From NCBI GenBank assembly GCA_023213395.1, contig CM041465.1:123325741-123389740 (forward strand): 64,000 bases of DNA. Direction: 5' to 3'. The notes beneath the pieces were generated by a model, which made no database searches, was not told the DNA's origin, and saw nothing but the letters and a program-made list of their open reading frames with translations. The DNA is from Cycas panzhihuaensis (Eukaryota; Plantae; Cycadophyta). The position numbers were made by a program, and so were the translations under genes. Positions within the stretch are counted from its first letter, which is position 1, and every line of letters begins with the position of its first letter. This document shows positions 6,916 through 32,269 of this stretch, in pieces.

Positions 6916-7560
6916 TCCCATTCTTCTTTTTAACCACTATCATTGGTTTCACCCATTATCTATTGTCTACCTTATAAACATAAATTAATAACAACATGTT
7001 ATTTATGTTTTTAACTAGGGGATTCATATGGGGGGGCCTTTTTCATATTAATTTTATACCTTCCACTAATTCTATCTTGTGTACTCCAAATTTTGGTGTA
7101 ATTCCTTTGCTTTTATAAGACCATACAAATATATTTGCATTGTGTGAATAATACTAGAGCCTTTGTGACAATGGTTATATCTTAGTAATCACCCATGTTT
7201 ATGTTTTATAGCTAGATTTATGTTTGAATATTAGTCTTATGAACCTCAAGTCCTTTTAAATAATTCCCTATCTTGTCTTCTTTTATCTTATGAATTGATG
7301 TCTTCTTGTTTGTTCTTATGCCATGTCATATATTTGTGTATTTAAATGTGAATTTCCCATAAAAATAGTGAAAAATTGTAGAAGACAAATACCCTTTTTA
7401 TTTGATTTTTTTTCCTTTGGTTTTCCTCAGTAATGTGGTTGGTATGTGTTCTTCTTCTTAACACAATAGTTAGTGCAACATTCTTCACAACATAGTAGCT
7501 AGTTTTTTCTCCATTTTATTCACTTACAAAACACACAAGTTGGCCTTTACTCTGATACCA
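5700..7560 (-). mobile_element. Highly degenerate Ty1/Copia remnant with tRNA-iMet PBS
   Basis: CTCTGATACCA at 7550-7560 is the reverse complement of TGGTATCAGAG. Faint minus-strand traces of integrase (LxPPKF) near 6020 and the RT start (GKKSISI) near 5800. No ORFs remain, so boundaries are approximate. Confidence 0.4.
6874..6913. repeat. Compound (AT)n(GT)n microsatellite
   Basis: Directly visible. Confidence 0.95.
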
Positions 7561-8305
7561 TATCAAAGTTTATTCACAATACGAGCAATATTTGCACATA
7601 ATAATTACTTTATTAATCATTTATATAAGTTTGAGGTATACAAATTTGGAAAATGAATGATGTTAATAAACACAAGGGTGGGAGGATAAAGTGATATTAC
7701 AAAGGAAAGGAACACAATCATCTCCAGATTTAATGATTCGTACACCTCAAGGCTTGTAAACACCAATGGGTGTTAATTAGTTATGGATAAATTGAAAGCA
7801 TAATAATAATACAGAATAAGTATTAATAGAATAAGTATCAATACTAAATAAAAGTTAATACAAAATTAACATTAGAACAATGCTACCTTTTAACTTTACC
7901 TTTAATAATGGGTGGATTCTCATTTGATTGGCTAATTTTAGAGAAAATGTCGAGTATGTTAAATGTGTCTTACGTATCTTACTTTAGGTTTCCTCAAGAA
8001 TATATTGACCTTTTGATTCCCCATCTATTAAGGTACCATTATTAAGAGATCATGCAACATAGGTAGTTGAGGCTCTAAATTAATATCTCTCGTTTTATCT
8101 CTTTATAGTCAAAATTTGATTTGATGTTTTTGGGGGTAAACCTTTATGGCCCTATTATTATAGGAAAATATATTAAAATATCACGAACTTCACCATTTAA
8201 ACACCTCCATCAAGAGAAATATTAGTCCAAACTTCTTAATTAGTGCTCACAACAATAAGAACTTTTAGCTCATAGAGAGTTCATGAAATACTCCACGTGA
8301 TATCC

Positions 8306-8307
<2 letters not shown>

Positions 8308-8340
<33 letters not shown>
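8308..8340. repeat. (TA)n microsatellite
   Basis: Directly visible. Confidence 0.95.
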
Positions 8341-8342
<2 letters not shown>

Positions 8343-9191
8343 TTTCCTTATATTTTGTTTTGTTATAATATAAATACATCCCTTGTTATAAAATTGGAGC
8401 TTAGTAAAAGCATTATTAAGGCATGGTATATACCTAAATATATTTTTTGTATTTTGCAATCTGATACTACATGATATTAGAGGTGAGAGGCCTATATGTG
8501 TATAACTATTTTAGGAGTCATATGTTCGAATATATATAACTGATATGAATGATAAGTCTAGTAGTAATAAAATATAACAAGATGGCATTATAGGTGAATA
8601 TATACATATACCTATTTTAGGATTTGTATGCTCAAACATATATAAATGATGTAAATAATAAGTTCAATAGCAATAAGATATGATAAGATTATTTAAGGGA
8701 AGAAAATAGATGGGAGGCATATAATATGAATGAGGGAGAAATTCTTGAATAGTGGAAGTTTTAAAAGCCATGACTTCTGTGTTTGATTCTTTTTCTAATA
8801 AATCACTCAATTATTAATACATGTAGTAGAGTATGGTTATAGTTCAAACCTATGTATGAAAATAGTCCCTTTTAGAATGTGAATAAAAAGGGAAACTTAT
8901 CTTAATTATTCTCTAATTACCTTAGTCTTCCCTAACTACTTTGACCTTAAGGTAGTTAATTGCCAAAGTTGGCTGACCATTTGTTATAATTTGGAAGGTG
9001 GTGGGTTATTTTAGTTAGTTACCTCTTTGATTAGACATATATAAATTTCACTTGTGCATTCTTATGTGGAGAGAATATTCTACCCATATTGGGGGCTTTT
9101 TGGTATTGTGTGTTAGAGGAAGGGTCCTTTTAAATTCATTAGTAGGTTACATGGCTTTGGCTGTATTGTGATGCATAGTAATTTTTGTGGT

Positions 9192-9301
9192 AAGATGCAG
9201 CTGGTGGTGTGATGCCACTTGTTTTATGCCTAGTATTCTTAATGGTAAGATACCATATGTGGTGTGATGCTACATATTTGATGCCTAGTAAGCTTAAGGG
9301 T
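9192..9301. repeat. ~55-bp tandem dimer, probably within an old LTR fragment
   Basis: AAGATGCAGCTGGTGGTGTGATGCCAC...ATGCCTAGTATTCTTAATGGT followed by AAGATACCATATGTGGTGTGATGCTAC...ATGCCTAGTAAGCTTAAGGGT. Confidence 0.6.
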
Positions 9302-10105
9302 ATAATGCCATTGGTTTGGGCTCATATATTTCCATGGTGAGATGTCAAAGTATTGTTATTATTAGGCCATAATATTATTAATTCTATATAATAATGTCAT
9401 TGTTATTAGTATTCTAATGTTCATATCATATGGCTTAGCTTGAATGTAGATTCTTGTGATCAATTTTCAAATGGCTAAGTGGTGAATGTTTCTTCGATTT
9501 TAGGCCCCTTACTCTCAATCAAGTATGATCTCGTAGACTCTCTTGTTAGATATGTATAACATGCTTGTTATTTGTTTTATGTTGCATTTGATTGCATCCG
9601 CTCAAATTATCTCGATCAAAAATACATCTAAAAACTTCCTAAAAAATTGCCGATCAATTACACATCATCCATAGTTAAAATTGCATGAAATCCATTTGGC
9701 TTCGCATTTTGATGATCATGCTCTATAGATCTATTTGTTCTGAGGTTATTTTCTTTGATACACAATAATCTTCACTTAAAAAATATTTAAAAATCTTGCC
9801 CTTCTTTGCCAAAATTTGCTCATGAATTATACATCTTTCATAGATGATAAAACCCTATTAAATTTGATTTCATTTGGCATTTTTTAAACTATAATCCCAA
9901 GATCCATTCAACATTAATGTTGTTTACCATTAACTCATATCAAATCCATTTCATAAGCAATAAAAATCACTTGATCCACACTAAAAACTCATTTATTTGA
10001 TGTTTGTTCTATGTGAAAACTCTTAAAATCTCCACTCATTCATTGCATTTTTTAATTTAATTTATAGTCTCATTAATCAAAAGCTCTTTTCCATCAAACC
10101 CCACT

Positions 10106-12039
10106 TGGAAATATGAGTGAAATAAGGTGTGCAACACAAGGGGAGCCAGGGACTTGGTCACATAAATTATCTATAATCAACCTTTATAAGCATTTGTTAG
10201 TATCATGGAGCAACATGGATCAATGTAGTTGTACTGTATCATACGTTTCGAGCTTCTCACCCTCGAAGGCTCTTTTCAGATAGGCAAAGTTGTATGGGTG
10301 TGTTTTATCTTATATTCATGTGAGAGTCTTATCAATTCATGAATGTGAGACAATTCACACACACACACACCCCATCCCATGAACGTGAGAAATTTATCCA
10401 ATAAAGGGGATACGTTACATTTAACCAAGCAGCAATCTAATTCAAGAATGTGGGAAATCAACTCGATGAGGGGAATATATCACACCCAATCCAAGTGGAA
10501 ATGGCCAAGACAATGCACTAGGAAATATGAGTGGAATAAGATGTGCAATACAAGGGGAGCCAAGGATTCGATCGCATGAATCATCAATAATCAACCTTTC
10601 TAAGTATTTGTTAGTACTAAGAAGCAACGTGGATCAATGCAGTTGTACTGTATCACACGTTTCAGGCTTCTCACCCTCTAAAGCTCTTTTCGGATTAACA
10701 AAGTTGTATGTGTGTGTTTTACTTTATATTTATGTGAGAGTCTCGTCAACTCATGAATGTGAGACAATTCACATACACGCAAACATACACCACATCCCAT
10801 AAACGTGGGAAATCTACCTAATGAAAGGGATGCATCACATCCAATCGAGCAGCAACCTAACCCAAGAATGTGAGAAATCAACCCGATGAGGGGAATACAT
10901 TACACCCAACCCAAGTGACAATGACCAAGACAGAGCATTAGGAGATATGGGTGGAATAAACCGTGCAGCACAAGGGGAGCTAGGAACTTGATCACATGAA
11001 TCATCAATAATCAACCCTTCTAAGCATTTCTTAGTACCGTGGAGTAACGTGGATTGGTGTGCTTGCACTGTATCACACGTTTCGAGCTTTTCACCATCGA
11101 AGACTATTTCTAAATTGACAAAGCTGTAGGGGTGTGTTTTACCTTATATTCATATGAGAGTCTCGTCAACTCATGAATGTTGGACAATTCACACACACAC
11201 ACATACACAACACATCCCATAAACATACAAAATCTACTCAATGAATGGAATACATCACATCCAACTTTGTAGCAACATAACCTAAGAGTGTGAGAAATCA
11301 ACTCGATGAGGGGAATACATCACACACAACGCAAGTGACAATGGTTAACACAGAGCACTAGGAGATATGAGTGGAATAAGGCATGTAACACAAGGGCAGT
11401 CAGGGACTCGATCACATGAATTATCAATAATCAACCATTCTAAGCATTTGTTAGTACCAGAGAGTAATGTAGATCGGTGTGATTGCACTATTACACTGTA
11501 TCATACATTTCGGATTTTTCACCCTCGAAGGTTATTTTCAGATTAGCAAAGTTGTAGGGGTGTGTTTTACCTTATATTCATGTCATAGTCTCGCCAATTC
11601 ATGAATGTGGGACAATTCACACATGCACAAACATACACAAACACCACATCCTATGAACGTGGGAAATCTACCTAATGAAGGGGATACATCGCATTCAACC
11701 GAGCAGTAATCTAACCCAAGAATGTTAGAATCAACCTGATGAGGGGAATACATCACACCCAACCCCAGTGACAATAGCTAAGATTGAGCACTAGGAGATA
11801 TGAGTGGAACAAGGCATGCAACACAAGGGGAGCTAGAGACTCGATCATATGAATTATCAATAATCAATCATTCTAAGCATTTGTTAGTAGTATGGAGCAA
11901 CGTGGATCGATGTGGTTGCACTGTATCACATGTTTTGGACTTTTCACTCTCGAATGTTTTTTTCGGATTGGCAAAGCTGTAGGGATGTGTTTTACCTTAT
12001 ATTCATGTGAGAGTCTTGCCAACTCAGAAATGTGAGACA

Positions 12040-12083
<44 letters not shown>

Positions 12084-14942
12084 GCACACACACATAAACA
12101 CACACATCCCATGAATGTGGAAAATCTACCTAATAAAGGAGATATATTACATCTAATTGAGTAGCAACCTAACCTAAGAATGTAGGAAATCAAATCGATG
12201 AGGGGAATACATCGCACCCAACCCAAGTAGCAATGATAAAGACAAAGCACTAGGAGATATGAGTGGAATAAGGCGTGCAACACAAGGGGAGCTAGGGTAT
12301 CGATTACATGAATCATCAATAATCAAACTTTCTAAGCATTTGTTAGTATCATAGAGCAACGTGGATCGGTGTAGTTGCATTGTATCACACATTTCGGGCT
12401 TCTCACCCTCGAAGACTCTTTCCGAATTGACAAAGTTGTAAGCATGTGTTTTATCTTATATTCATGTGAGAGTCTCGCCAACTTATGAATGTGGGACATT
12501 TCGCAAACACACGCACACACACATACACACACACCACATCCCATGGACATGAGAAATCTATCCAATGAAGGGGATACATCGCATTCAACCGAGCAGCAAC
12601 CTAACCCAAGAATGTGGGAAATCAACCCGATGAGGGGAATACATCACACCCAACCCAAGTGGCAACAACTAAGACATAACACTAGGAGATATGAATGGAA
12701 TAAGGTGTGCAACACAAGGGGAGTTAGGGACTCAATCACATGAATCATCAATAATCAACCCTTCTAAGCATTTGTTAGTACCGGGAAGCAACGCTGATCG
12801 ATGTGGTTGCACCGTATCACACATTTCGGGCTTTTGACTTTCGAAGGCTTTTTTTAGATTGGCAAATCTGTAAGGGTGTGTTTTATATTATATTTATATG
12901 AGAGTCTTATTAATTCATGAATGCGAGATAATTCACAAACACACGCAAAGACACACCACATTCTATGAACGTGAGAAATCTACCTAATGAAATGGATACA
13001 TCACATCCAACCGAGCAGTAACCTAACTCAAGAATGTAGGAAATTAACTTGATGAGGGGAATACATCACACCTAACCGAAGTGGCAACGACTAAGATAGA
13101 GCACTAAGAGATATGAGTGGAATAATGCGTGCAACACAAGGGGGGCCAATGACTCAATCACATGAATCATTAATAATCAACCATTCTAAGCATTTATTAG
13201 TATCGATGAGCAACGTGGATCAGTGTGGTTGTACTGTATCACATGTTTTGGGCTTTTAACTCTCGAATGCTCTTTCCGGATTGACAAAGCTATAAATGTA
13301 TATTTTACCTTATATTCATGTGAGAGTCTCATAAACTCATGAATGTGGGACAATTGACATACATACACACTACATCCTATGAACGTGAGAAATCTATTCA
13401 ATAAAGGTGATACATTACATCCAACTGAGTAACAACTTAATCCAAGAATGTAGGAAATCAACGTGATGAGGGGAATACATCACACCCAACCCAAGTGGCA
13501 ATGGCCAAGACAGAACACTAGGAGATATGAATGAAATAAGGCATGGAACACAAGGGGAGTCAGGGATTCGATCACATGAATCAATAATAATCAACAATTC
13601 TAAGCATTTTTTAGTATCGGGGAGTAACGTTGATCGGCGTGGTTTCACTGTATCACACATTTTGGGCTTCTCACTCTCGACGACTCTTCTCAGATTGGCA
13701 AAGCTATATGGGTGTGTTTTATCTTATATTCATGTGAGAGTCTTGACAACTCATAAATGTGGGACAACTCACACACACACACACATATACACATCATATC
13801 CCATGAACGTGGTAAATCTACCAAATGAAGGGGATACATCACATCCAACTGAGCATCAATCTAACCTAAGAATGTGGGAAATCAACTCGATGGGGAGAAT
13901 ACATCACAACCAACCCAAGTGGCAACAGCCAAGACGATGCAGTAGGAGATATGAGTGGAATAAGGCGTGTAGCATAAGCGGAGCCAATGGCTCGCTTACG
14001 TGAATCATCAATAATCAACCCTTCTAGGCATTTGTTAGTACTGGGGAGCAATGTGGATCGATGTTGTTGCATTGTGTAACACCCTTCAAGCTTCTTACCC
14101 TCAAAGGCTCTTTATGGATTGACAAAGTTGTAGGGGTGTGTTTTATCTTATATTCATGTGAGAGTCTCGCAAACTCATTAATGTGGAACAATTTACACAC
14201 ACACAGTCACGTGCCACCGTTACACTAAAAGCCTCGGGGTGGTTTTGAAAGAAGACTTCCTCTAGATAGTTAGCGTCACGCACTCTAAAACTCCCCCATC
14301 ACGAGGAGTTGGTTGTACCTACACGGCATGCATGTCCACCACGACGTTCTGCGATGGTCACTTCCCCACCTTCACGCATGTTCGGGTGCACTACCGTGGT
14401 ACACATAACCGGTTTTGAACCCTAGTCGCTCTAATACCACTTTTCATAGGCTGCCATTACACCAAAAGCCCTAGGGTGATTTGGGAAGAAGACTTCCTCG
14501 AGATAGTTAACGTTACACGTTTCAACACACGTGCACACACATACATTATATCCCATGAATGTGGGAAATCTACCCAATGAAGGGGATACATCACATCCAA
14601 CCGAGAAGCAATCTAACCAAAGAACGTGGGAAATCAATCCAATTAGGGGAATACATCACACCCAACCCAAGTGGCAACGACCAAGACAGAGCACTAGGAG
14701 ATACGAGTGGAATAAGGCATGCAGTACAAGAGGAGTCAGGAACTCGATCACATGAATCGTTAATAATCAACCCTTCTAAGTATTTATTAGTATCGGGTAG
14801 TAACATAAATCAGTGTGGTTGCACTGTATCACATGTTTCAAGCTTCTCACCCTCGAAGGCTATTTTTGGATTGACAAAGATGTAAGGGTGTGTTTTACCT
14901 TATATTTATGTGAGAGTCTCGTCAATTCATGAATGTGAGACA

Positions 14943-14981
<39 letters not shown>

Positions 14982-17900
14982 ATATCCCCAAAACATAAGA
15001 AATCCATCTAATGAAGGGGATACATCACATCTAACTGAGCCGTAACTTAACCCAAGAATGTGGGAAATCAACCCGATGAGGGGAATACATTACACCTAAC
15101 CCAAGTGGCAATGGCAAAGATAGAGCATTAGGAGATATGAGTGGAATTAGACACACATCATAAGGGGAGCTAAGGACTCGATCACATTAATCATCAACAA
15201 TCAACCTTTTTAAGCATTTGTTAGTATTGGGGAGCAACGTGGATCGATGTGGTTGTATTGTATCATACGTTTCAGGCTTTTCACATTTGAAGGCACTTTT
15301 CGAATTGACAAAGCTGTAGGGGTGTGTTTTACTTTATATTCATATGAGAGTCTCGTCAACTCATGAATGTGGGATAATTCACACACACACGTATACGCAC
15401 ACCACATCCTATGAATATGGAAAATCTACCCAATGAAGGAGATATATCACATTCAACCGAGCAGCAACCTAATATAAGAATGTGGAAAATCAACTCGATG
15501 AGGGGAATACATCACAACTAACCTAAGTGGCAACGACTAAGATAGAACACAATGAGATATGACTGGAATAAGGCTTGCAACACAAGGCCAGCTAGGGACT
15601 CGATCACATGAATCATCAATAATCAACCCTTCTATGCATTTGTTAGTACTAGGGAGCAATGCAGATCAGTGTGGTTGCAATGTATCACATGTTTCGAGCT
15701 TGCCACTCTCGAAGGCTCTTTCTAAATTGGCAAAGCTGTAGTGGTGTGTTTTACATTTTATTCATGTGAGAGTCTCGCCAATTATTGAATTTGGAATAAT
15801 TCACACACACATACTACATCCCATGAACGTGGAAAATCTACGCAATGAAGGGGATATATCACATCAAACCGAGTAGCAACCTAACCCAAAAATGTGGAAA
15901 GTCAACTTGATGAGGGGAATACATTACACCCAACCTAAGTGGCAATGACCAACACAGAGCACTAGGAGATATGAGTGTAATAAGGTGTGCAGCACAAGGG
16001 GAGCCAGGGACCCGATCACATGAATCATCAATAATTAATCATTCTAAGTATTTGTTAGTATCGGGGAGCAACGTGGATCAGTGTGGTTGCACTGTATCAT
16101 ATATTTTAGGATTCTTACCGTCGAAGACTCTTTCCAAATTGGCAAAGCTATATGGGTGTGTTTTATCTTATATTGATGAGAGAGTCTCGCTAGTTCATGA
16201 ATGTAAGACAATTCACACACATACGTACAACCATACACATCTCATGAATGCGAAAAATCTACCTAATGAAGAGGATATATCACATCCAACCGAGTAATAA
16301 CCTAACTCAAGAATGTGGGAAATCAACCTGATGAGGGGAATACATTGCACCAAACCCAAGTGGCAACGATTAAGATAGAGCACTAAGAGATATGAGCGGA
16401 ATAAGGCGTGCAACATAAGGGGAGCTAGGGACTCGATTGCATGAATTATCAATAATTAACCCTTCTAAGCATTTGTTAGTACCGGAGAGCAATGTGGATC
16501 GGTGCGATTGCACTGTATCATACGTTCCAGGCTTCTCACATTCGGAGGTTCTTTCCGTATTGACAAAGCTATATGGGTGTGTTTTATTTGATATTCATAT
16601 GAGAGTCTCACCAATTCATGAATGTGGGATAATTCACACACACACACACACACACACACACCATGAACGTGGAAAATCTATCAAATGAAGGGAATACGTC
16701 ACATCTAACTGAGCAGTAACCTAACCCAAGAATGTGAAAAATCAACTGAATGAGGAGAATATCACACCTAACCAAAGTGGCAATCACCAAGACAGAGCAC
16801 TAGGAGATATGAGTGGAATAAGGCGTGCAACACAAGGGGAGCTAGGGACTCGATCACATGAATCATCAATAATCAACCCTTCTAAGTATTTGTTAGTACC
16901 GAGGAGCAATATGGATTGGTGTGGTTGCATTGTATTACACGTTTCGAGCTTTTCACCCTCGAAGGCTCTTTTTGGATTGACAAAGTTGTAGGAGTGTGTT
17001 TTACCTTATATTCATGTCAGAGTCTCGCCAACTCATAAATATTGGACAATTCACACACACGCACACATGTACAATATATCCCATAAACATGGAAAATCTA
17101 CCTAATGAAAGGGATACATCACATTGAACTGAGCAGTAATATAACCTAAAAATGTAGGAAATCAACCCAATGATGGGAATACATCACACCAAACCCAAGT
17201 GGCAATGGTCAAGACAGAGCACTAGGAGATATGAGTGGAATAAGGCATGCAACACAAGGGGAGCCATGGGCTTGATCACATGAATCATCAATAATCAACC
17301 TTTCTAAGTATTTGTTAGTATTGGGGAGCAACGTGGATTGGTGTGGTTGTACTGTATCATATGTTTTAGGCTTCTCACCCCTGAAGGCTCTTTCTAGACT
17401 AGTAACGTTGTACCAGTGTGTTTTACCTTATATTAATGTGAGAGTCTTGGCAACTCATGAATGTGGGATAATTCACACACGCACACATATACACACATCA
17501 CATCTTATGAACGTGGACAATTTACCCAATGAAGGGGATACATGATATCCAATTGAGCAGCAACCTGACCAAAGAATGTTGAAAATCAATCCGATGAGGG
17601 GAATATATTGCACCCAACCCAAGTGGCAACGACCAAGATAGAGCATTAGGAGATGTGAGTGGAATAAGGCATGTGGCATAATGGGAGCCATGAACTCAAT
17701 CACACGAATCATCAATCATCAACTTCTAAGCATTTTTTTAGTACCTGGGAGCAATGTGGATTGTTGTGGTTGTGCTGTATCACACGTTTCAGGATTCTCA
17801 CCATTGAATGCTCTTTCTGGATTAGCAAAGTTGTAGGGGTGTGTTTTACCTTATATTCATATGAGAGTCTCACAAACTCATGAATGTGAGATAATTCACA

Positions 17901-18119
17901 CACACATGCGCACACACATATCACATCCTATGAACATGAGAAATTTACCTAATGAAGGGGATACATTACATCCAATTGAGCAGCAACCTAACCAAAGAAT
18001 GTGGGAAATCAACCCGATGAGACGAATACATCACACGCAATCCAAGTGGTAATGGCTAAGACAGAGTACTAGGAGATATAAGTGGAATAAAGCAACACAA
18101 GAGGAGCCAGGGACTCGAT
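10106..18119 (+). repeat. ~420-bp tandem repeat array, left arm (about 18 full units plus a partial), subfamily L
   Basis: The anchor GGA(G/A)ATATGAGTGGAATAAGG recurs at ~10107, 10521, 10941, 11361, 11794, 12253, 12685, 13107, 13521, 13945, 14697, 15131, 15553, 15965, 16386, 16803, 17225, 17649 and 18072. Each unit has a variable (CA)n tract and an internal ~65-bp dimer. Confidence 0.97.
14205..14527 (-). mobile_element. TRIM (terminal-repeat retrotransposon in miniature), 323 bp, inserted in the (CA)n tract of a repeat unit
   Basis: Two ~86-bp direct repeats (14205-14290, 14442-14527) share GAAGACTTCCTC(T/G)AGATAGTTA. PBS complement GCTCTAATACCA at 14428-14439; PPT complement CTCCCCCATC at 14291-14300; ~150-bp non-coding interior. 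Confidence 0.85.
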
Positions 18120-21100
18120 GTCACTTGGTTGGATGTGTTGCACGCCTTAATCTCGTATGTTACTTCTTAGTACTCTGTCTTGGTCGTTGCCACTTGATTG
18201 GATGTGATGTATCCATCTCATTAGGTTGATTTCCCACATTCTAGGGTAAGGTTGCCACTTGGTTGGATGTGAGATAACCCCTTCATTGGGTTGATTTCCC
18301 ACCTTTATGGGATGTAGTGTATATATGTGTGTAATTTGTCCCACATTCATGAGTTGGTAAGACTCCCACATGAATATAAGGTAAAATACACCTCTACAAC
18401 TTTGCTAATTCGAAAAGAGCATTCGGGGGTGAGAAGCTTGAAACGTGTGATACAGTGCAATCACACTTATCCACGTTGCTTCCCGATATTAATAAATGTT
18501 TAGAAGGGTTATTATTGATACTTTTTGTGATTGAGTCCCTGTCTTCCCTAGTATTACACGCCTTAGTGTCGTCTCCTACTTCTTAGTACTCTGTTTTGGC
18601 CATTGCCACTTGGGTTGGGTGTGATGTATCCCCTTGATTGGGTTGATTTGCCATATTCTTGGGTTGGGTTGCCACTTGGTTGAATGTGAGATGTTCCATT
18701 CATTGGGTTGATTTTTCACGTTCATGGAATGTGGTGTATATATGTGTGATTTATCTGACATTCATGAGTTGACCAGACTCTCAGATGAATATAAGGTAAA
18801 ACACACCCTTATAACTTTGCCAATTCGTAAAGAGTCTTCGATGGTGAGAAGCCTGAAACGTGTGATAAAGTGCAACCACACCGATCCAGGTTGCTCTCCG
18901 GTACTAACAAATGCTTAAAATGGTTGATTATTGATGATTCATGTGATTAAGTCCTTGACTTCCCTAGTGCTGCATGTCTTAATGTCATCCCCTACTTCCT
19001 AATACTATGTCCTGGCCGTTGCCACTTTGGTTGGGTATGATGTACCCCCCTCATTGGGTTGATTTTCCACATTTTTGGGTCAGGTTGTCACTTGGTTGGA
19101 TATGAAATGTTCCATTCATTAGGTTGATTTCTCACCTTCATGGGATATGGTGTGTGTGTATGTGTGTGATTTGTCTCATATTCATGAGTTAGTAAGACTC
19201 TCAAATAAATATAAGGTAAAACACACCCTTATAGCTTTACCAATCTAGAAAGAGTCTTCGAGAGTGAGAAGTCTGAAACGTGTGATATAGTGCAACGACA
19301 TCGATCCACGTTGCTTCCTAGTACTAACAAATGCTTAGAAATATTGATTATTGATGATTCATGTGATTGAGTCATTGGTTCCCCTAGTGTTGCATGCCTT
19401 AATGCCATTTCCTACTTCCTAACACTCTGTCTTGGTCGTTGCCACTTGGGTTGGGTGTGATGTATATCCCTCATTAGGTTGATTTTCCACATTTTTGAGT
19501 CGGATTACCACTTAGTTAGATGTGAGATGTCCCATTCATTTGGTTGATTTTCTATGTTCATGGGATGTGGTGTATGTGTGTGTGTGATTTATCCCACATT
19601 CATGAGTTGACGAGACTCACATGAATATAAGGTAAAACACACCCTTATAACTTTGCCAATCTAGAAAGAGCCTTCGAGGGTGAGAAGCCTGAAACGTGTG
19701 ATATAATATAACCACACTGATCCACGTTGCTTCTCGGTATTAATAAATGCTTATAAGGGTTGATTATTGATGATTCATGTGATTGACTCCCCGACTCCTA
19801 TAGTGTTGCACGTCTTAATGTCCTCTCCTATTTCCTAGTACTCTGTGTTGGCCATTGCCACTTGGTTTGGTTGTGATGTATCTCTCTCATTAGGTCGATT
19901 TCCCACATTCTTGGGTCGAGTTGGCACTTGGTTAGATGTGAGATATCCCTTTCATTGGGTTGATTTCCCACGTTCATGGGATGTGGTGTATGTGTGTGAT
20001 TTGACACACATTCATGAGTGAGTTAGACTTTCACATAAATATAAAGTAAAGCACACCCCTACAACTTTGCCAATCCGGAAAGAGCCTTCGAGGGTGAGAA
20101 ACCTGAAACATTTGGTACATTGCAACCACACCGATCCACGTTGCTTCTCGGTACTAACAAATACTTAGAATGATTGATTTTTGATGATTCATATGATTAA
20201 GTCATTCACTTCCCTAGTGTTGTAGACCTTAATGCCCTGTACTACTTACTAGTACTTTGTCTTGTCCGTTGTCACTTGGGTTATGTGTGATGTATGCCCC
20301 TCATTGGGTTGATTTTCCACATTCTTGGGTCTGGTTGCCACTTGGTTGGATGTGAGATGTCCCATTCATTAGGTTGATTTCTCACATTCATGAGATGTGG
20401 TGTATGTGTGTGTGATTTGTTCAACATTCATGAGTTGGCCATACTCTCACATGAATATAATGTAAAATACATCTTTACAACTTTGTCAATCCAAAAAGAT
20501 TCGTTGAGGGTGAGGAGCCTGCAACGTGTGATACAGTGAAACCACATTGATCCACGTTACTCTTGGGTACCAACAAATACTTAGAAGGGTTGATTATTGA
20601 TGATTCATGTGATTGAGCCCTTGACTCCTCTAGTGTTGCCTGTGTTAGTGTCCTCTCCTACTTGCTAATATTCTATCTTGGCTGTTGCCACTTGGGTTGG
20701 GTGTGGTGTGTCCCCCTCATTAGGTTGATTTCTCACATTCTTGAGTCGAGTTGCCTATTGGTTGGATGTGAGATGTTTCCTTCAATGGGTTGATTTCCCA
20801 CGTTCATGAGATGTGGCGTATGTGTGTGTGATTTGTCTTACATTCATGAGTTGACTAGATTCTAAAACACATCCTTATAGTTTTGCCAATCCAGAAAGAG
20901 CCTTGGAGAGTGAGAAGCTTGAAACGTGTGATATAGTGCAACCACACCGATCCATGTTACTCTCCGGTACTAACAAATACTTAGAAGGGTTGATTATTAA
21001 TGATTCATGTGATTGAGTCCATGGCTCCCCTAGTGTTGCATGCCTTAATGTCCTCTCCTATTTCTAGTACTCTATTTTGGCCGTTGCCACTTAGGTTGGG

Positions 21101-24100
21101 TGTGATGTATCCCCCTCGTTGGGTTGATTTCCCATACCTTCGTTGGGTTGATTTCTCACATTCTTGGGTCGGGTTGCCACTTGGTTGGATGTGAGATGTC
21201 TCATTCACTGGGTTGATTTCCTACGTTCATGGGATGTGGTGTATTTGTGTGTGTGATTTGTCCCACATTTATGAGTTGGCTAAATTCTCACATGAATATA
21301 AGGTAAAACACACCCCTATAATTTTGTCAATCTGGAAAAAGTCTTCGAGGGTGAGAAGCCCAAAACGTGTGATACAATGCAACCACACCGATCGATGTTG
21401 CTCCATAGTACTAACAAATGCTTAGAATAGTTAATTATTAATGATTTATGTGATTGAGTCCCTGGCTCTCAAAGTGTAGCACGCATTAATGTCTTCTCCT
21501 ACTTCTTATTACTCTTTAGTAGTCATTGCCACTTGGGTTGGGTATGATGTATCCCTATCGTTTGGTTGATTTCTCACATTCTTTGGTCAGTTGGGTTGCC
21601 ACATGTTGGATGTGAGATGTCCATTTCATTGGGTTGATTTCCCATGTTTATGGGATGTGGTGTATGTGTATATGTGTGATTTGCCCGACATTTATGAGTT
21701 GGCCAAACTCTCACATGAATATAAGGTAAAACACACCTCTACAACTTTGCCAATTCGAAAAGAGCCTTCGAATGTGAGAATCTCGAAATGTGTGAGAAAA
21801 TGCAACCACACAGATCCACGTTGCTCCTTGGTACCAATAAATGTTTATAAGAGTTGATTATTAATGATTCATGTAATCGAGTCCGTGACTTCCCTAGTGT
21901 TGCACGTCTTAATGTCCTCTCCTACTTCCTAGTACTCTGTATTAGCCATTGCCACTTGGGTTGGATGTGATGTATTCCCTTCATTGGGTTGATTTCCCAC
22001 ATTCTTGGGTCGGGTTGCCACTTGGTTGGATGTGAGATGTACCATTCATTAGGTTGATTCTCCACGTTCATGGCATATGGTGTATGTGTGTGTGTGATTT
22101 AACCCATATTCATGAGTTAGACAGACTCTCACATGAATATAAAGTAAAATACACCCTTACAATTTTGCCAATTCGGAAAGAGCCTTCGAGGGTGAGAAGC
22201 TCAAAACGTGTGGTATAGTGCAACCACACTGATCCATGTTGCTTCCCGGTACTAACAAATATTTAGAATGGTTGATTTTTGATAATTCATGTGATTAAGT
22301 CTCTAGCTCTCTTAGTGTTGCATGCCTTAATGCCCTCTTCTACTTATTAGTACTCTGTGTTATCCGTTGTCATTTGGGTTATGTGTGATGTATGCCCCTC
22401 ATTGGGTTGATTTCCTACATTCTTGGGTTAAGTTGCCATTTGGTTGGATGTGAAATGTTCCATTCATTGGGTTGATTTTCCGCATTCATGGGATGTGCTG
22501 TATGTGTGTGTGATTTGTCCCACATTCATGAATTGGCCAGATTCTCACATGAATATAAGATAAAACACACCCTTACAACTTTGCCAATTCGAAAAAACCC
22601 TTTGAGGGTGAGAAGTTCGAAACGTGTGATACAATGCAACCATACCGATCCATGTTGTTCTTGGGTACTAACAAATGCTTAGAAGGGTTGATTACTGATG
22701 ATTCATGTGACTAAGTCTCTGACTCTCCTAGTGTTGCACGCCTTAATGTCCTCTCCTACTTCCTAGTACTCTGTCTTGATTGTTGTCACTTGGGTTGGGT
22801 GTGATGTATCCCCCTCATTAGGTTGATTTTTTACATTTTTGGGTCAAATTGCCACTTGGTTGGATGTGAGCTGTCACCTTCATTGGATTGATTTTCTACA
22901 TTCATGGGATGTGGTTTATATGTGTATGTGTGTGTGATTTGTCCCACATTTGTGAGTTGGTTACACTCTTACTTGAATATAAGGTAAAACATACTCCTAT
23001 AACGTTGCAAATCCAGAAAGAGTCTTCGAGGGTAAGAAGCCCGAAATGTGTGAAACAATACAACCACACCGATCCGCATTGCTCCCTACTACTAACAAAT
23101 GCTTAGAAGGATTGATTATTGATGATTCATATGATTGAGTCCCTGGCTCCTCTAATGTTGCACGCCTTAATGTTCTCTCTTACTTCCTAGTACTTTGTCT
23201 TGGCCGTTGCCACTTGGGTTGAGTGTGATGTATCCCCCTAATTGGGTTGATTTTCCACAACTTGTGTTGGGTGTGATGTATCCCCTTCATTGGGTTGATT
23301 TCTCACATTCTTGGGTCGGGTTACCACTTAGTTGGATGTAAGATGTCCTCTTCATTAGGTTAATTTCCCATGTTCTTAGTATGTATGTGTGTGTGTGTGA
23401 TTTGTCTGACATTCATGAGTTGGCCAGACTCTCATATGAATATAAGGTAAAACACACCCTTATAACTTTGCCAATTCAAAAAGAGCCTTCGAGGGTGAGA
23501 AGCTCGAAACATGTGATACAGTGCAACCACACCAATCCACGTTGCTTTCCGGTACTAACAAATGCTTAAAAGGGTTGATTTTTGATGATTCATGTGATTG
23601 AGTCCTTGGCTCCCCTAGTGTTGTACGCCTTAATGTCCTCTCATACTTCCTAATACTTTGTTTTTATCATTGTCACTTGGGTTGGGTGTGATATATCCTC
23701 ATCATTAGGCTGATTTTCCACATTCTTGGGTCGGATTGCCACTTGGCTGTATGTGAGATGTTACCTTCATTGGGTTGATTTTCGATGTTCACAGGATATG
23801 GTGTATGTGTATGTGATTTGTCCCACATTCATGAGTTGGCTAGACTATCACATGAATATAAGATAAAACACACTCTTACAACTTTGTCAATCTGAAAAGA
23901 ATCTTCAAGTGTGAGAAGCCTGAAACGTATGATACAGTGCAACCACACCGATAAACGTTCTTCCCCAGTACTAACAAATGCTTAAAATGGTTGATTATTA
24001 ATGATTCATGTAATTAAGTCCATGACTCTCCTAGTGTTGCATGGTTTAATGTCATCTCCTACTTCCTAGTACTCTGTCTTGGCCGTTGCCACTTGGATTG

Positions 24101-24880
24101 GGTGTGATGTATCCCTCTCATTAGGTTGATTTTCCACATTCTTGGGTCGGGTTGCCACTTGGTTGGATGTGAGATGTCCTCTTCATTGTGTTGATTTCCC
24201 ACATTCATGGGATGTGGTGTGTGTGTGTGATGTGTCTCACATTCATGAGTTGGCCAGATTCTTATATGAATATAAGGTAAAACACACCCCTACAACTTTG
24301 TCAATTAAGCCTAAAACATGGGATATAATGCAACTACACCAATTCACGTTGCTCACCGGTACTAACAAATGCTTAGAAGGGTTGATTATTGATGATTCAT
24401 GTGATTGAGTCCGTGGTTCCCCTAGTGTTGCACACCTTAATATCCTCTCTTAGTTCCTAGTACTCTGTATTAGCCATTGACACTTGGGTTGGGTGTGATG
24501 TATCCCCTTTATTGGATTGATTTTTCACATTCTTGGGTCGGGTTACCACTTAGTTGGATGTGATATGTCCCATTCATTGGGTTGATTTCCCATGTTCATG
24601 GGATGTGGTGTATGTGTGTGTATATGTGATTTGTCGCACATTCATGAGTTGGCCAGACTTTCACATGAATATAAGAGAAAACACACACCTATAACTTTGT
24701 CAATCTAGAAAGAGTCTTCGAGGATGAGAAGCCCGAAATGAGTGATACAGTGTAACCACACTGACCTACATTGTTCTATGGTACTAACAAATGCTTAGAA
24801 GGGTTGATTATTGATGCTTCATGTGATTGAGTCCCTGGCTCCCCTAGTGCTGCATGCCTTAATGTCATCTCCTATTTCCA
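18120..24880 (-). repeat. ~420-bp tandem repeat array, right arm in inverted orientation (about 16 units), subfamily R
   Basis: Reverse complement of the left-arm unit. The anchor TACTCTGTCTTGGCCGTTGCCACTTGG recurs at ~18171, 18587, 19003, 19421, 19838, 20253, 20670, 21068, 21510, 21932, 22351, 22767, 23191, 23653, 24070 and 24461. Fixed differences from the left arm. Confidence 0.97.
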
Positions 24881-27155
24881 TCTGGTCTTGATTCACTCAG
24901 CCACAGGTTGTACACATAGCCCATATGACCTTATGATAAATGACAAAATGTGCTAATATACATTTTCACGCTTAAATTTGTATTTTTAACAACACAAAAC
25001 CACTCTTTTGAGCATAATCTTATATATGATATCAAATTCACGATCCATCTAAACTGGAAAAATTTTAACTCAGACACCGTCATAATACATGGTCACGTAA
25101 GTATTTTTGTTAATCATTTGAAAGAGAATTTAATCAATGAATTTTGGATGATTTAAAAAGCAATAAATTTAGTTCATTTTAATATTATATAGGTCTATAA
25201 CTTGGACTCATATTTTCAATCTATGTTTACACTTTTCAGTTGGATATTATAATTGAGTATTTCTCCTTTATAATATGACTCCCATGGAGACTTAGAGGAC
25301 TTCTCCTTAATTTTTCTATCACCAACAATAGAAAAGAGGCCTCATCTATGCAGTCTTCCTAATAAGAATGTCTTCATAATAAGACACTCTTAAGCATATA
25401 CTTCTCAAGGTGAAGACATTAAACAACTTTGAGCTTTTTCTTTTTAGTCTCATATTCTTTGGAAGAAGATGTTAGTTCATCCTCTTCTCAACCTTTTGTA
25501 AGGTCCTCTAGAGGGGTTGAGTCTTTGACTCCTCAAGCGTATCATTCTTGTAAGTCTCCTTCAATCTCTCACATATAATTTGCTTTGTCTAGCCCTATGC
25601 CTTCCATATAACCATTGACAAATTCTTCCTCTTTTCTTCAAAATCCTATATTTAGGTTGGATCTTTCATGATTATCATCATCCTTTCCTATTTCTACCCC
25701 CTTGATATAAAGCATACCGTTTGGATCATCGGGCTTAGTTAGTCATACTTCGCAACTAGAATCTCAATCCATACCTCAAACAATTTTACAACCAACCTTT
25801 CAAGAGGTTCCACTTCAAGTTTCTACTATGACCTTTACTAATTTGGCTCAAATAGCTCAAGCCTTGGGTACTCTTGGTGATTTGTTAAATCAAGTAATAA
25901 ACCGTTAATCCAAAATGACAAGTTGTCAAAAATTTCAAGTGAAAAGTAGCTCAGAGAGGAGATAGAGGTAGTTGAAGATTGGGGGAGAGCATGTTTAAGA
26001 AATCTTTAAGAGGGTAATAGTGAAGCAATGGTATGTAGGTCCTTGTGTGTATGAGTTATTTATGGAAATCATTATTACTACCCTGTATTTAGTGGAGTCA
26101 AGGGTTCTATCATTTTAGTATGGTTGGTTGGCCAATTTACTTCAAATTGGGAGTTTATATGGCTTCCTTAGGAAGTAATTAATCCTTTATAAAAGTGATT
26201 AAAGCAAACCAATCCAAAGTACTTTTATCTTCTCTATTTAATTTACAAGGGAAGAATGACATCAAAGCAAGCCAAGAAATTCATCCCCAAGGTCTTCAAT
26301 AAGGATAGTCAAATTTTCCAATGGTCTTTTTCAGAATTAGTGATGTTTCTAATACTCTGTAAGAAGTTTACTCCTGCACTTTAAAAGCGTACTTTGTTGG
26401 CCAAATGCCCCTAGAAGCTATTGTTCAATAGTGGGCTAAGTTAACTATCAAAATTTCTAATAGAAAATAGTATCCATTTGGAACTTATGGAAGGGTTTTT
26501 TTTTCCCCTTTATCTTTGAATCTCTAGAAGCCTGACAACAAGTATTGTGTAAAGGCTCATGGATATGCTAAAGAAACTTGGTTATTTTTTATTATTGGGA
26601 TCTATACTTCTTTATAGATAGGGACACTACTTTTAAATACCTAGTGTAGGTGGAGTTCTTGAGTCTTTCAATGTACTATTGACCTTTTATAAAGGAACTC
26701 AGATAGTCGTTAGGGGACATTATCTCTCTAAAACTCCACAAGGAGTTCTCATTGTTGGGTATGTGACAATAATGTGTAAGGATTCTAAAATTTTAGACCT
26801 TTTTCAGCGTAGTTTTTCCTACCAATTTTTCTTGGGAGAATCCAAGGGAACCGACAACCCCCCTTAAGCCAGGAGGTGTGAGGGGAGTAGCACTTGAGAA
26901 GGTTTATACAATGCAAAATTGTGTAGATATGTTCAATAAACCAGTATTACTAGAGAAACTCAAATGGTGTTTGGCTTCTTTTGGTTTGTAGAAAGGGTGA
27001 TGAATGGTTCATGGAAGGTACTAGGTAAAATTATTGTCAAGGTGGAGATTGTTGGGTATGTGACAACAATGCATAAGGAGACTAAAATTTTGGACCTTTT
27101 TTAGCACGATTTTTTCCACCAACTTTCCTCGGGGGGATCCAAGTGGGGTGGTAAA

Positions 27156-30100
27156 TGTTGGATATGTTGAACACTTTACAGGTGTTATATATGTATAAGG
27201 GGGTTAAAATTTTGGTCTTGCTTCGGTGCAGTTTTTCCCTCCAACTCCTTGTGGGATGATCCAAGGGATGTGGCAACCCCTTTTGGTGGGGGGGTGCAAG
27301 GGGTGGGGGAATTGTCTCCTCCTCCCCTTCTCCCCTCCTTAAAATAGGGGTTCGGGGGTGACAACCCCAAAGCAAATTTTAGGGTTCAAACAGAAAAGAG
27401 AATCATGGTCGCTCATCATAAAAACTCTAAATCTAACGGTTGAAATCTTGCACCTTCTTATGACATTCTTTATGTAACCTAAATTAAATAATTCTTTGTA
27501 GAGTGACAAAGTGGATGAGTTGATGAGGCGAGTTGGGGTTTCATCTCTGTAATTCTGTAGCTATTGCTCAGGTTAATAAAATGTTTATGCTTAGACCTGA
27601 ACCTCCTAGTGTTTTTTGTTGTGTGTTTGATTTGTTTATGTTATTTTTCTTTGCATGGTTAAAGTTATGTTAATATTATTTTCACAGTTGCATTTTGCTC
27701 TTTATTTGGTATTACAACTAAGGGTTTTAGTTCTGTGGGAAGCCATTTGGTGAGTGGGAGTCTTGTTTGGTAAACTTAAGTGTGAAGATCATAGCAAGTA
27801 CTACAAAGATGGAGACTGAAAAGTACAATGACTAGAACTTTGAGTTGTAGAAGCTAAAGATGGAGTATATCTATATCGTGAAAGATTAGTGGATCGTTGT
27901 GGTAGGAACAAAGCATGCGACTATGGGTGATGATGACTAGAAGAAGCTTGATTGAAAAGTAATCAGTTTGATAAGGCTATGCCTTAAAGACACGATGTTT
28001 TTCAACGTTGCAACAGAGACTGCGACCAAAGATTTGGAGACAAAGTTAAGGGCTTTGTATTGAATTAAGTCTTTGGTTAATAAGATATTTCTTTGAGAAA
28101 AGTTGCATTCACTCAGAATGAGTGATGGAGATGTAGTTGCAGATCATTTCACTACATTTAACACTGTGGTGAGTCAGCTTGTTTTAGTTGGGGTAATAAT
28201 GTCTGAAGAAGATAAGTGTATTGCCTTGTTATGCTTGTTTTGTGAGTCATGGGATAATCTTGTGACGACAATTGGTAGTACAGGTGCTACCACTTTAAAA
28301 TTTGATGATGTTGTTGCTACTTTGCTGTCAGAAGAGACAAGCCAAAAATCTCTTGAAGATTATTTAAAAAAAGTATTAGTAGTGAGAGGTCAAATTTTGG
28401 ATTGCGATCAATAAAGCCCTAGGAACAGACAACCAAAATCTAGAGGAAATCTAAATCTCCAAGCAGAGGCCCTTTGGTATGCTAGAGATGTGGAAAGGCT
28501 AGCCATATGAAGAGGCAGTGTTGAGTTAAGGTTGACAATGGAAAGTCACATGAAGCTACTTCTTTCATGATAGTAAAAGCCTCCAATGAAGCCGATGGCG
28601 ATGTTTATTTGGTAACTTTAGGTAAGTTGTCAAATGTTGAGTCTTGGTTAATCGACTCTGGTGCTTTGCTTCATGTTACTCCCCATAAGAAGTTTTATGA
28701 ATACCCAAGTATTGATGGAGGTGAAGTATTTCTTAAGAATCATTACCCATATAAAGTTATAGGTCATGGAAGGGTGAAGGTTTGATTTGGGAATGAAAGG
28801 GTTAAAATTATCCCTGATGTGAGTCATATTCTAGTTTGGCTATGAGTATGTTGTCTATTAGTCAATTGGGTGATGTAGGAATATAAGTGATTTTTAATAA
28901 AGATGATTGCGGAATGGTACAAAGAGCATTGGTGTTAGTAAGAGGGGTCTGATTTGGAACGTTATACAAGCTTGATGCGAGCACAATGTGTGTTGACAGT
29001 TGTAATCCAACTATTATAAAAAGTAGCAATAATATAGGTAGGACCCAAATATCACTTGCTGGTAAAACTATGTTGTGGCATCAGAGATTGGGTCATATTG
29101 GAAAGAAATGTCTCCATGATTTATTCTCGAAAGGTATGGCAGAAGATATCTTTAGAATTAATGGCTCTTTTGATTTTGATTTCTATGAGCATTGTGTGTA
29201 TGGTAAACAGAATCAAGTTAGTTTTCCTTTAAGTTCAAAGAGAGTAAAGGGTATTCTTCAATTGGTACACAACGATGTTTTTGGACCTGTTGATGTACTC
29301 TCATTGGGTGGATCCAAATACTTTGTCTCGTTCATAGATGATTTATCAAGAAAAACATGGCTGTATTTTCTCAGAGAGAAATCTGAGGTCTTCAGTAAAT
29401 TCAAAGAATTTAAGACCTTTGTCGATAATCAGAGTGACAAGCAGATCGAGGTACTAAGGAATGATAATGGAGGTGAGTTTTACTCAAAGGAGTTTGAGTA
29501 GTTCTGTAAATAGTATGGGATAGTAAGACAAAAGATAATTTCCTATACGCCACAACATAACGAAGTTGCTGAAAGGATGAATAGGACCTTGCTGGAGAGA
29601 TCAAGGAGTGTGTTTAGTAAACAGATCACCGACGGCTGCCTTAGTGTACAAAACACCTGAATAAGTGTGGTCTAGTGAAAAACTATCTCTTGGTCATCTT
29701 AGAGTTTTTGGTTTTGAAGCTTTTGTGTATGTTCTTAAATAACAGGGAACTAAGCTTGATTTTAAAGCACAAAAGACTATTTTCATTGACTATGGTGATG
29801 GTGTCAAAGGGTACAAGCTTTATAACCTTGAATCATAAAATGTTGTATATAACTGTGATGTTGTCTTAAGGAGGAGTTTAACTCTCTAAAGCAAGATGAT
29901 GAACCAAAGGAGGAAGACTCTAAGAAGGTACAGTTTGAGGTAAGAGATAAAGATTCTGCATCAGAATATGAGTTAATCGAAGAGGAAGGACTAATTGTAG
30001 AGGTAGCTCAACCTCAAGAACTCCACATCTTGAGGAGATCAACTCATGAGAGAAGACAGTTTGACAAATATATTCTTAAGGACTTTTGTCGCTCCTCTTT

Positions 30101-32269
30101 TGTTTTATCGGTTACAGATGATGATCCAGGTATTGTTAAGGAGGCTATGGAGTCAAAAGAGAGCCAACTCTGGGTGAAGCTTATGGAAGAAGAAATGATG
30201 GCCTTGGATAAAAATAACATATGGGATTTGGTGGATTTGTTTGATGGCAGAAAACCTATTGATAACAAATAGATCTTCAAGAAGAAGTTTCAGGCAAATG
30301 GTACTGTGGAAAAGTACAAGGCTCGCTTAGTAGCAAAGGGTTATTCCTAGGTCAATGGAATAGATTTTGGTGAGGTATTTTCTCATGTTGTAAAAGTAGC
30401 TTCTATTAGATTTTTATTGGCTGTAGCAGCTGCCTATGACCTTAAGGTGGATTAAATGGATGTGAAGACTATGTTTCTTCATGGTGACCTTGAGGAAGAA
30501 ATTTATATGTTACAACCTCAAGGTTTTGAAGTTGTAGGGAAGAAGAATATGGTGTGTAGGTTGAAGAAGTCATTATATGGTTTGAAATAGTCACCAAAGA
30601 TGTGGTATCAGAAGTTCGATTCATATATATTGGCAGATGATTTTATATCCATCAAAGCAAATCATCATGTTTATTATAAACAGGTTGGTGATCACTTTGT
30701 TATTCTAGCTTTATATGTTGATGACATACTTTTAGTTGGTAACAATGAAGAAATGAGCCAACTTGTGAAAGCCAACTAGTATCTCATTTAGAGATGAAGG
30801 ACCTTAGTGCTACACATTTTATTTTGGGCATTAAGATTAAAAGGGATAGGAGAAGTAGGAAGATTTAGCTTAGTCAAAGACGGTACATTAAGATAATATT
30901 GTAGCAGTTCAAGTTGCAGGATAGTAAACTAGTTAATATTCCTCTTTTTGTTAGTTTAAAATTATCAGTTGAACAATGCCCAAAGACTCACTAAGAAGTT
31001 GAAGACATGGCATTTGTCCTTTATGCTAGTGTTGTTGGTAGTCTGATGTATGCAATGGTTTGTACTCGACTAGACATTATCCATCTAGTGGGAGTAGTTA
31101 GTAGGTACATGTCAAACCTAGGCAGGGAGCATTGCTTGGCTATGAAAATAATTTTCAAGTATTTGCGAGGTATATTAGACTATGGAATTTGCTATCAAGG
31201 AGATCTCATAGAGTGTAGGACAATAAACCTGAGAGGGTCTGTTGATGCTAATTGGGTTGGAGATCTTGACAACAGAATATCTATAAGCGAGTATGTTTTT
31301 ACCCTTTGTGGTGGCACAGTTAGATGGATGAGCAAAAGACAAGAAGTTGTGGCACTTTCTAGCATAAACGACGAGTATATGATAGCTACCCATGTGTGCA
31401 AGGAAGCAGTTTGATTACATCGATTATGCACAAATGTTGGATTTAAGGAGGATGCTACAAGTATAAATTATAATAGTCAAAGTGTAATCTACCCAGCGAA
31501 GAACTCCACTTTTCATACTCGGTCGAAGCATATTGATGTGCAATTCTATTTTTTATGAGAGAGTTCAAGATTACAACATGGACTTGCAAAAGATTACTAC
31601 ATATGAAAGTGTTGTAGACTCATTGAGCACAGAAAAATTTAAATGGTGTAGAAAGGCAATGGGTATTTGTGATTTTGGCATTAAGTAGTTGTGTATGTAG
31701 GTTTCTTGTAAAGTGTTCAACAAGTGGGAGATTGTTGTGTATGTTGAACACTTTACAAGTGTTACATATGTATAAGGAGGCTAAAATTTTGGTCATTCAT
31801 TAGCGCAGTTTTCCCCTCTAACTCCTTGTGGGGGGATCCAAGGGGGGTGGCAACCCCCTTTGGTATGGGAGGCACGGAGGGAGGGGAGAGATGTCTCTCC
31901 CCTCTGCAAGCAGGGGTTCGAGGGCGACTGCCCCTGAAGTAAATTTTAAGGTTCAAACAGAAAAGAGAATCATGGCCGCTCATCATAAAGACCCTAGATC
32001 TGACAGTTGAAATCTTGCACTTTTTAATGACATTCTTCATGTAACATGAATTGGGTAATTCTTTATAGAGTGTATATTGGATGAGTTGATGAGGTGAGTT
32101 GGGGTTTCGTCTTTGTAATTCTTTAGCTATTGCTCAGATTAATAAAAGGTCTATGCTTAAACCTGGATCTCTTAGTGTTCTTTGTTGTGTGCTTGATTTA
32201 TTTTGCTATTTTTCTTTGTATGGTTAAAACTCTATTAATATTGCTTTCACGGTTACATTTTTCTCTTCA
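27156..32269 (+). mobile_element. Ty1/Copia element B, full-length but degenerate, inserted in the LTR of element A
   Basis: LTRs 27156-27704 and 31733-32269 (TGTTG.ATATGTTGAACACTTTACA...CTCTTCA). Degenerate PBS TGGTATTACAAC at ~27707; PPT AAGTGGGAGAT at 31722-31732. Flanks GTAAA/GTAGC form an imperfect TSD. Confidence 0.9.
27791..31688 (+). pseudogene. Disrupted gag-pol of Copia B (gag, protease, integrase, RT, RNase H)
   Basis: ORF fragments: ESWDNLVTT (gag), WLIDSGA (protease), LWHQRLGH/YFVSFIDDLSR/LRNDNGGEF (integrase), YASVVGSLMYAMVCTR (RT), VDANWVGD/QEVVALSS (RNase H). Many TAG/TGA stops. Confidence 0.92.

Follow-up and report, generated by a model that had tools for sequence, protein, structure and literature searches.

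A 14.8-kb head-to-head array of a 422-bp repeat in Cycas panzhihuaensis, possibly a decayed foldback element

Foldback-type elements such as FB, Galileo and FARE are defined by the presence of many copies flanked by target-site duplications (TSDs), and for some of them a transposase is known, which belongs to the P superfamily in the case of Galileo and is Mutator-like in most others. The repeat units of FB have a size of tens of base pairs, compared with 422 bp in the repeat block of Cycas panzhihuaensis that we describe here. Strand switches of satellites, for their part, usually lie inside much longer arrays, and are not accompanied by phase-matched outer ends that border unique DNA. The system that comes closest to the Cycas block is Tetris of Drosophila virilis, a foldback element whose terminal inverted repeats (TIRs) hold ~220-bp tandem repeats (TIR-220) that also form satellite arrays (PMC4079207). 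Elements of the CACTA type, such as Jozin in Chenopodium, can contain subterminal repeats or captured satellite arrays (PMC8978399). We analyzed a stretch of 64,000 nucleotides (positions 123,325,741 to 123,389,740 of contig CM041465.1, assembly GCA_023213395.1), hereafter called the window, in which two tandem arrays of the 422-bp repeat are arranged head to head and together form a 14.8-kb inverted repeat.

The results obtained with Tandem Repeats Finder (TRF), BLAST and nhmmer agree on this architecture. TRF delimited two arrays with periods of 414-422 bp, at positions 10102-18119 and 18135-24879, and a profile built from 16 units of the left arm was run in nhmmer and, together with a BLAST search of the first unit against the window, allowed the two arms to be segmented in register. 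An earlier note on this DNA had described about 18-19 forward units meeting about 16 reversed ones; the segmentation bears this out, giving 18 units and a partial one on the left, and a partial one and 16 units on the right (Table 1). Every unit contains two copies of a sub-repeat of ~65 bp and a short (CA)n tract, and the TGGGAAAT motif is present twice per unit, in direct orientation only. Outside the two arms, no further copies of the unit were detected by nhmmer with the unit profile in the 64-kb window. The largest open reading frame (ORF) in the block, of 158 aa, has no Pfam match and no relative in the protein collection. In addition, searches of the unit against Rfam and for tRNAs gave no match, and a structured RNA, or a tRNA or short interspersed element origin of the unit, was ruled out on these grounds. 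In our view, the block is a real, ancient and non-coding long inverted repeat, whose arms of 8.0 and 6.7 kb are made up of two arm-specific subfamilies.

Several lines of evidence support the existence of these two subfamilies. Firstly, units of the same arm share on average 81.4% (left) or 82.4% (right) pairwise identity, compared with 77.6% for units of different arms. Secondly, the consensus sequences of the arms differ at 24 columns (each arm being at least 70% uniform), and the diagnostic states of its own arm are present in each of the 34 units. Many transversions and one 2-bp indel are among these diagnostic differences, which can therefore be regarded as differences between the founders of the arms; strand-biased hypermutation was ruled out as their source because many transversions and indels reach frequencies of 88-100%. 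Thirdly, the split between left-arm (L) and right-arm (R) units received 100/100 support in a maximum-likelihood tree. Within this tree each arm is nearly star-like, with a median terminal branch of 0.11 in both arms and an inter-arm stem of 0.054, and internal structure is limited to some weakly grouped pairs. Two of these, R05-R10 and R06-R11, join units at a distance of five, a hint of one multi-unit duplication. Identity within the arms is flat at 79-88%, without any effect of distance. No mirror symmetry between the arms was found, the central neighbours L18 and R01 being 77% alike.

The coalescence of the units by arm, together with the near-star topology, indicates that the founders separated first, that a short burst of amplification then took place in each arm at about the same time, and that homogenisation ended thereafter. 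That an inverted pair came first and that each arm was amplified in tandem afterwards had already been proposed, and this order fits the arm-wise coalescence, the fully supported split and the lack of mirror sisters. With flat identity and a near-star tree, the similarity between neighbours and the higher-order repeats that mark ongoing homogenisation are both absent from the arms. The subsequent decay consists of 76-79% transitions, with C>T plus G>A changes being 6-8 times commoner than the reverse changes, and CpG sites have changed at 0.28-0.29 per site, versus 0.10 elsewhere. This pattern is as expected for methylated and silenced repeat DNA, methylation being suggested by the spectrum itself. 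Substitution rates are slow in gymnosperms, and at such rates 0.10 changes per site would correspond to an age of tens of millions of years.

The outer ends of the block are the second feature that requires explanation. The octamers TGGAAATA and TATTTCCA, reported before as the end sequences at 10106 and 24880, are present there exactly, and they provide the block with 5'-TG...CA-3' ends. Clear homology to the unit begins with CACT at 10102 on the left and ceases at 24880 on the right, so that the ends are indeed only ~5 of 422 bp apart in phase, as the earlier note had it; for a unit of 422 bp, a phase match this close has a ~2.6% probability by chance. Internal units have CACTAGGAGATA (left-arm consensus, beginning with CACTA) or TACTAGGAAGTA (right arm, with TACTA) at this place. 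The base ahead of GGAAATA is a T in both terminal units and an A in essentially all 32 internal ones, the sole other T in that column coming from a misaligned row. GGAAATA itself is not specific for the ends, and because it is also found in L02, R04 and R07, it is probably an ancestral state rather than a terminal speciality.

Neither flank (7000-10101 and 24881-26750) has a further copy in the window, and the two are not inverted copies of one another. Consequently, the idea that an existing array was copied by folding back does not fit in a simple way, and a defined element terminus would explain the combination of phase-matched ends and unique, non-inverted flanks more easily than random breaks. 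Neither a local alignment (p = 0.48) nor anchored alignments (p = 0.04-0.47) proved that the inverted termini continue into the flanks; there is a weak, non-significant hint (p 0.04-0.5) that homology extends for another ~12 bp on either side, starting with ATCAA at 10093 and at 24892. The left boundary also contains a small local palindrome at 10087-10113, consisting of TTTCCA, 12 nt and TGGAAA. The terminus thus has a short inverted counterpart immediately beyond the left end, which could be due to chance, or could be a footprint or a target preference.

The repeat is not restricted to this locus. The read data covering 15300-21200 come from four runs with three species labels, in the form of short contigs assembled from low-coverage runs. 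Between 4,100 and 5,700 contigs of ~50-60 bp matched this region with 95-100% identity; across both arms, most bins of 197 bp reached a summed word depth of 10^2-10^4, while the largest share of sampled words present in any run was at most 14%. The family of the 422-bp unit, including both subfamilies to the extent that short contigs permit a judgement, is therefore very abundant and common to related species, with the contigs informing about the abundance of the units and not about the arrangement of other copies, the outer ends or an empty site. None of the RNA runs contained the stretch, a result that has no bearing on its expression. Taken with the TRF period of 414-422 bp, the contig depth shows the head-to-tail, high-copy monomers that characterize a satellite. 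Eleven metagenome loci retrieved with a conserved 20-mer were discarded as chance matches; nhmmer returned only one match of 37 nt (E = 3e-4). A literature search found no gymnosperm satellite of 420/422 bp, and no match to conserved k-mers of the unit.

The explanation we lean towards, with a confidence that falls a little short of even, is that the block is a decayed, non-autonomous foldback-type element with long TIRs. It would have started as two terminal modules of roughly 0.5 kb in inverted orientation, with the ends 5'-TGGAAATA ... TATTTCCA-3'. The tree shows that the two modules next diverged by ~5%, and that each was then amplified in tandem in one short burst, in both arms at about the same time. 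The interior would have been lost or closed by end-joining, an event that may have left the templated patch of 15-19 nt observed at the centre, and the units have afterwards decayed by ~0.10-0.11 substitutions per site, mostly through C>T changes. In favour of a transposon origin, the two arms froze together, as would be expected if a copy with internally uniform arms was deposited here or if the element family died. Like foldback elements, the block has long TIRs that consist mainly of tandem repeats (8022 and 6746 bp, with 18 and 16 units, 77% complementary in register) and a middle that is short and non-coding (the loop of 36 nt; the 158-aa ORF without Pfam match). We infer past mobility from the matched termini only.

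Several observations weigh against a foldback origin. Firstly, foldback elements are flanked by a TSD, and a comparison of all pairs of boundaries up to ~13 bp from the ends revealed no TSD of 3-11 bp, even though a duplication of 8-10 bp should remain visible at ~11% decay. Secondly, no transposase was found in the window; both absences had been noted before and hold. Thirdly, the repeat reaches the termini without a non-repeated flanking TIR domain of the kind present in Tetris. Fourthly, the L-then-R architecture is known here from a single locus, and the reading of the shared T and of the TG...CA ends is post hoc. Furthermore, strand switches within satellite arrays are common and do not need a transposon. 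Finally, among the ~50-60-bp contigs of the four low-coverage runs, none can be demonstrated to span the loop at 18099-18134.

Specific candidates for a TSD were inspected separately. The perfect 8-bp direct repeat TTTCCATC near the two ends was rejected, since it would bound 10096-24874, the ends of which are not inverted repeats; the probability of encountering such a pair by chance in the space searched is roughly 2-3%. Duplications of the sizes typical of hAT, Mutator, PIF, Tc1 and CACTA elements are absent at 10102/10106 versus 24880/24884. The designation "Mutator-like" that had been applied to the block is not sustained either: long inverted arms are present, but the test for a 9-11-bp TSD failed.

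A second possibility, which we rate as somewhat less likely, is that the block was never mobile and instead is a palindromic satellite block. According to this explanation, a repair accident (fold-back or template switch) inverted a short array or a single unit, the arms then underwent separate concerted evolution because inversion blocks unequal exchange, and both decayed once homogenisation had ended. When concerted evolution proceeds independently on the two sides of an inversion, variants specific for each arm are classically the result, and the end-joining signature with its templated patch at the centre, the lack of a TSD and the behaviour of the family as a high-copy, satellite-like repeat all agree with such a history. 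However, the inverted copy must then have stopped at the array boundary within ~5 bp, without taking an inverted flank with it, and the star topology with its equal branches would require that homogenisation came to an abrupt and simultaneous end in both arms. The lack of a gradient of similarity with distance within the arms also speaks against it. Of the marks of a fold-back made by repair, the short spacer with a templated insertion at the turning point is present (the patch of 15-19 nt), but the mirror-image identity of the arms and the inverted copies of the flank are both absent.

At the centre of the block, the stems GCAACAC and GTGTTGC and the 36-nt loop between them had been described as placing the centre in register; the stems and the loop are exact, and the hairpin they form in DNA folds better than 200/200 shuffles (z = -4.7). 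The register itself is soft. In terms of unit positions, the left arm reaches ~58-63 and the right arm begins at ~38, and an offset of at most 25 bp has a ~12% chance. Furthermore, a motif of the right-arm sub-repeat is exactly reproduced in the final 15-19 nt of the loop, with one copy 134 bp away; the 16-mers of this patch are found in the right arm at 19086 and at 18256, 20339, 21178, 22019, 22853 and 24156. The patch can be read either as templated filler added at end-joining, or as the remnant of a right-arm unit with an internal deletion of ~293 bp, the right arm then extending for 19 nt more. If the latter holds, the junction connects position ~58 of the left arm with position ~349 of the right arm and is not in register. 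In any case, palindromes formed or trimmed through a hairpin are in register by construction, and therefore the central register does not discriminate between the possible origins.

That two independent arrays belonging to different subfamilies were fused or juxtaposed, by insertion, deletion or inversion, is improbable in our judgement. It is true that the arms are distinct subfamilies, both apparently abundant genome-wide, and that the junction is out of register on one reading (left ~58 to right ~349). However, the phase match of the outer ends (~2.6%) and the unusual octamer that they share would then be due to chance alone, and the equal decay age and the similar copy number (18 versus 16) would be additional coincidences. 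The earlier note had thought of subtelomeric satellites in this context, which does not apply here because the locus is interstitial, with sequence extending for more than 108 Mb before the window and more than 124 Mb beyond it.

An assembly artefact, in the form of a mis-join or a chimeric foldback read at ~18120, is hardly credible: the short contigs of the low-coverage runs leave 18099-18134 without a read or contig that demonstrably spans it, but a foldback-read chimera gives mirror-identical arms, whereas here the two arms have an identity of 77%, carry 24 fixed differences and do not pair as mirror images, the switch of orientation coincides exactly with the switch of subfamily and with a repair-type patch, and the window does not contain any Ns.

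What the block could do at present is limited. A hairpin or cruciform of several kb, as had been suggested, is an overstatement, since the arms are 77% complementary in register and their longest perfect run measures 32 nt. A perfect complementary match of at least 21 nt to the left arm starts at 459 positions of the right arm, and the block could at most be a source of imperfect hairpin RNA, as predicted from its sequence. Nothing suggests a present-day function or activity.

The significance of the locus depends on which of these explanations is correct. If it is a foldback element, it would provide a clear gymnosperm example of the route from transposon to satellite, which so far has been documented mainly in Drosophila, and it would offer a handle on the spread of a very abundant 422-bp repeat through a giant genome. 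A more far-reaching version, namely that there is a mobile gymnosperm foldback family whose TIRs are whole multi-kb arrays of the 422-bp satellite up to the TG...CA termini, appears unlikely; if it were true, the transposon would be the vehicle that seeds and disperses a major tandem-repeat family across the genus. If, on the other hand, the block goes back to no more than a palindromic rearrangement at this site, it represents an ordinary relic of the turnover of repeats, and at the same time a dated example of how inverted orientation isolates the halves of an array, each of which keeps its own variants.

The coordinates of the block and its parts are given in Table 1. The insertion in unit L10 consists of ~1.3 copies of a sequence of ~238 bp, with direct repeats of ~65 bp at both its ends; with its CpGs intact, it is clearly younger than the array.

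Table 1. Position and properties of the inverted repeat block and of the features associated with it (window coordinates)
Feature	Position	Strand	Description	Basis
TTTCCATC direct repeat	10088..10095 and 24875-24882	+	perfect 8 bp; right copy overlaps terminal octamer	
Left arm, L-type subfamily	10102..18123	+	18 full ~422-bp units and 56-bp partial unit (unit positions 1-61, profile positions 2-61), 8022 bp	TRF, nhmmer, diagnostic columns, tree
Left terminal octamer TGGAAATA	10106..10113	+	CACT at 10102-10105 before it still matches unit	exact
Expanded (CA)n tract inside unit L05	12043..12106	+		TRF
Foreign insertion in (CA)n tract of unit L10	14207..14535 (approx.)	+	CpG-rich, ~330 bp, outside the repeat family	
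Turning point	18092..18141	.	7-bp stems GCAACAC (18092-18098) and GTGTTGC (18135-18141), 36-nt loop	exact
Patch TGTCACTTGGTTGGAT(GTG) at junction	18119..18137	+	two overlapping 16-mers	exact copies of both 16-mers in right arm
Right arm, R-type subfamily	18135..24880	-	38-bp partial unit and 16 units, 6746 bp	TRF, nhmmer, diagnostic columns, tree
Extra copy of ~65-bp sub-repeat between R07 and R08	21069..21136	-	68 bp	nhmmer
Extra copy of ~65-bp sub-repeat between R12 and R13	23193..23259	-	~68 bp	nhmmer
Right terminal octamer TATTTCCA	24873..24880	+	reverse complement of left octamer	exact

The remainder of the window contains one gene and a number of other repeats. A leucine-rich repeat (LRR) receptor kinase gene is located at 170-2652 (+) and probably continues downstream; it comprises a 625-aa LRR ORF followed by the first kinase exon, and the closest matches in the database, with only 50-55% identity, come from Ginkgo, Taxus, Pinus and Cryptomeria. 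This identifies the host as a seed plant, probably of a gymnosperm lineage that the protein collection lacks. A small Copia-type long terminal repeat (LTR) retrotransposon occupies 27148-32267 (+), with LTRs of ~555 bp (27148-27702 and 31724-32267) that are 81% alike and a gag-pre-integrase/integrase ORF at 28986-29501, and an unusual, strongly positive GC skew (0.2-0.29) extends over 26-34 kb. Another Copia-type reverse-transcriptase fragment is present at 49043-49621 (-), and LTR-like repeats at 45753-46072 are 81% related to 26751-27143. The region 34445-43702 (-) contains a caulimovirid-like endogenous sequence with a reverse transcriptase ORF (39185-40066) and a coat/zinc-knuckle ORF (41021-41791), part of which is present as a direct duplication of ~2.6 kb (34445-37050 versus 37399-39998, 95-97% identity, spacing 2948-2954 bp). 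Small tandem repeats are found in AT-rich sequence at 52921-53068 (73 bp x 2, 93%) and 58897-59023 (36 bp x 3.6, 77%).

With respect to the known systems, the block resembles CACTA (En/Spm) elements in that the left-arm units start with CACTA, as seen in the consensus CACTAGGAGATA, and that the array boundary falls on this motif. An assignment to this group was nevertheless rejected. The termini read CACTT on the left and CAGAT on the right (reverse complement) rather than CACTA at both ends, and the right-arm units start with TACTA. The triplets in the position of a 3-bp TSD, CCC (10099-10101) and GTC (24885-24887), differ, which is weak evidence at this age. In addition, the subterminal motifs of 10-20 bp in both orientations that are required of CACTA elements (PMC8978399) are absent, the sub-repeat being ~65 bp long and direct.

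Strand switches of satellites with one-sided concerted evolution share with the block the head-to-head arrangement of arrays of one family and the presence of side-specific variants; the block differs from them in that its whole extent is 14.8 kb and that it is located ~7.5 kb from the receptor kinase gene. In the case of FB of Drosophila melanogaster, Galileo (PMC3573991) and FARE of Arabidopsis (cited in PMC4079207), the many copies with TSDs and the transposase that define these elements have no counterpart shown at this block. As in these elements, on the other hand, internally repetitive TIRs make up most of the block, the repeats lie near the termini, and the arms are of unequal length, as they often are there.

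Tetris remains the best point of reference. Its TIRs do not exceed ~1.7 kb and include an outer domain of up to 866 bp that is not repeated; it also has a middle domain, and its TSDs of 8-10 bp have been verified (PMC4079207), whereas in the block the repeat extends to the very ends, the arms measure 6.7-8.0 kb, the middle consists of 36 nt and no TSD was found. In other respects the two are alike: both are non-coding, both have long inverted arms of tandem repeats of a few hundred bp whose copy number varies, neither has a known autonomous partner, and in both cases the repeat is also satellite-like in the genome.

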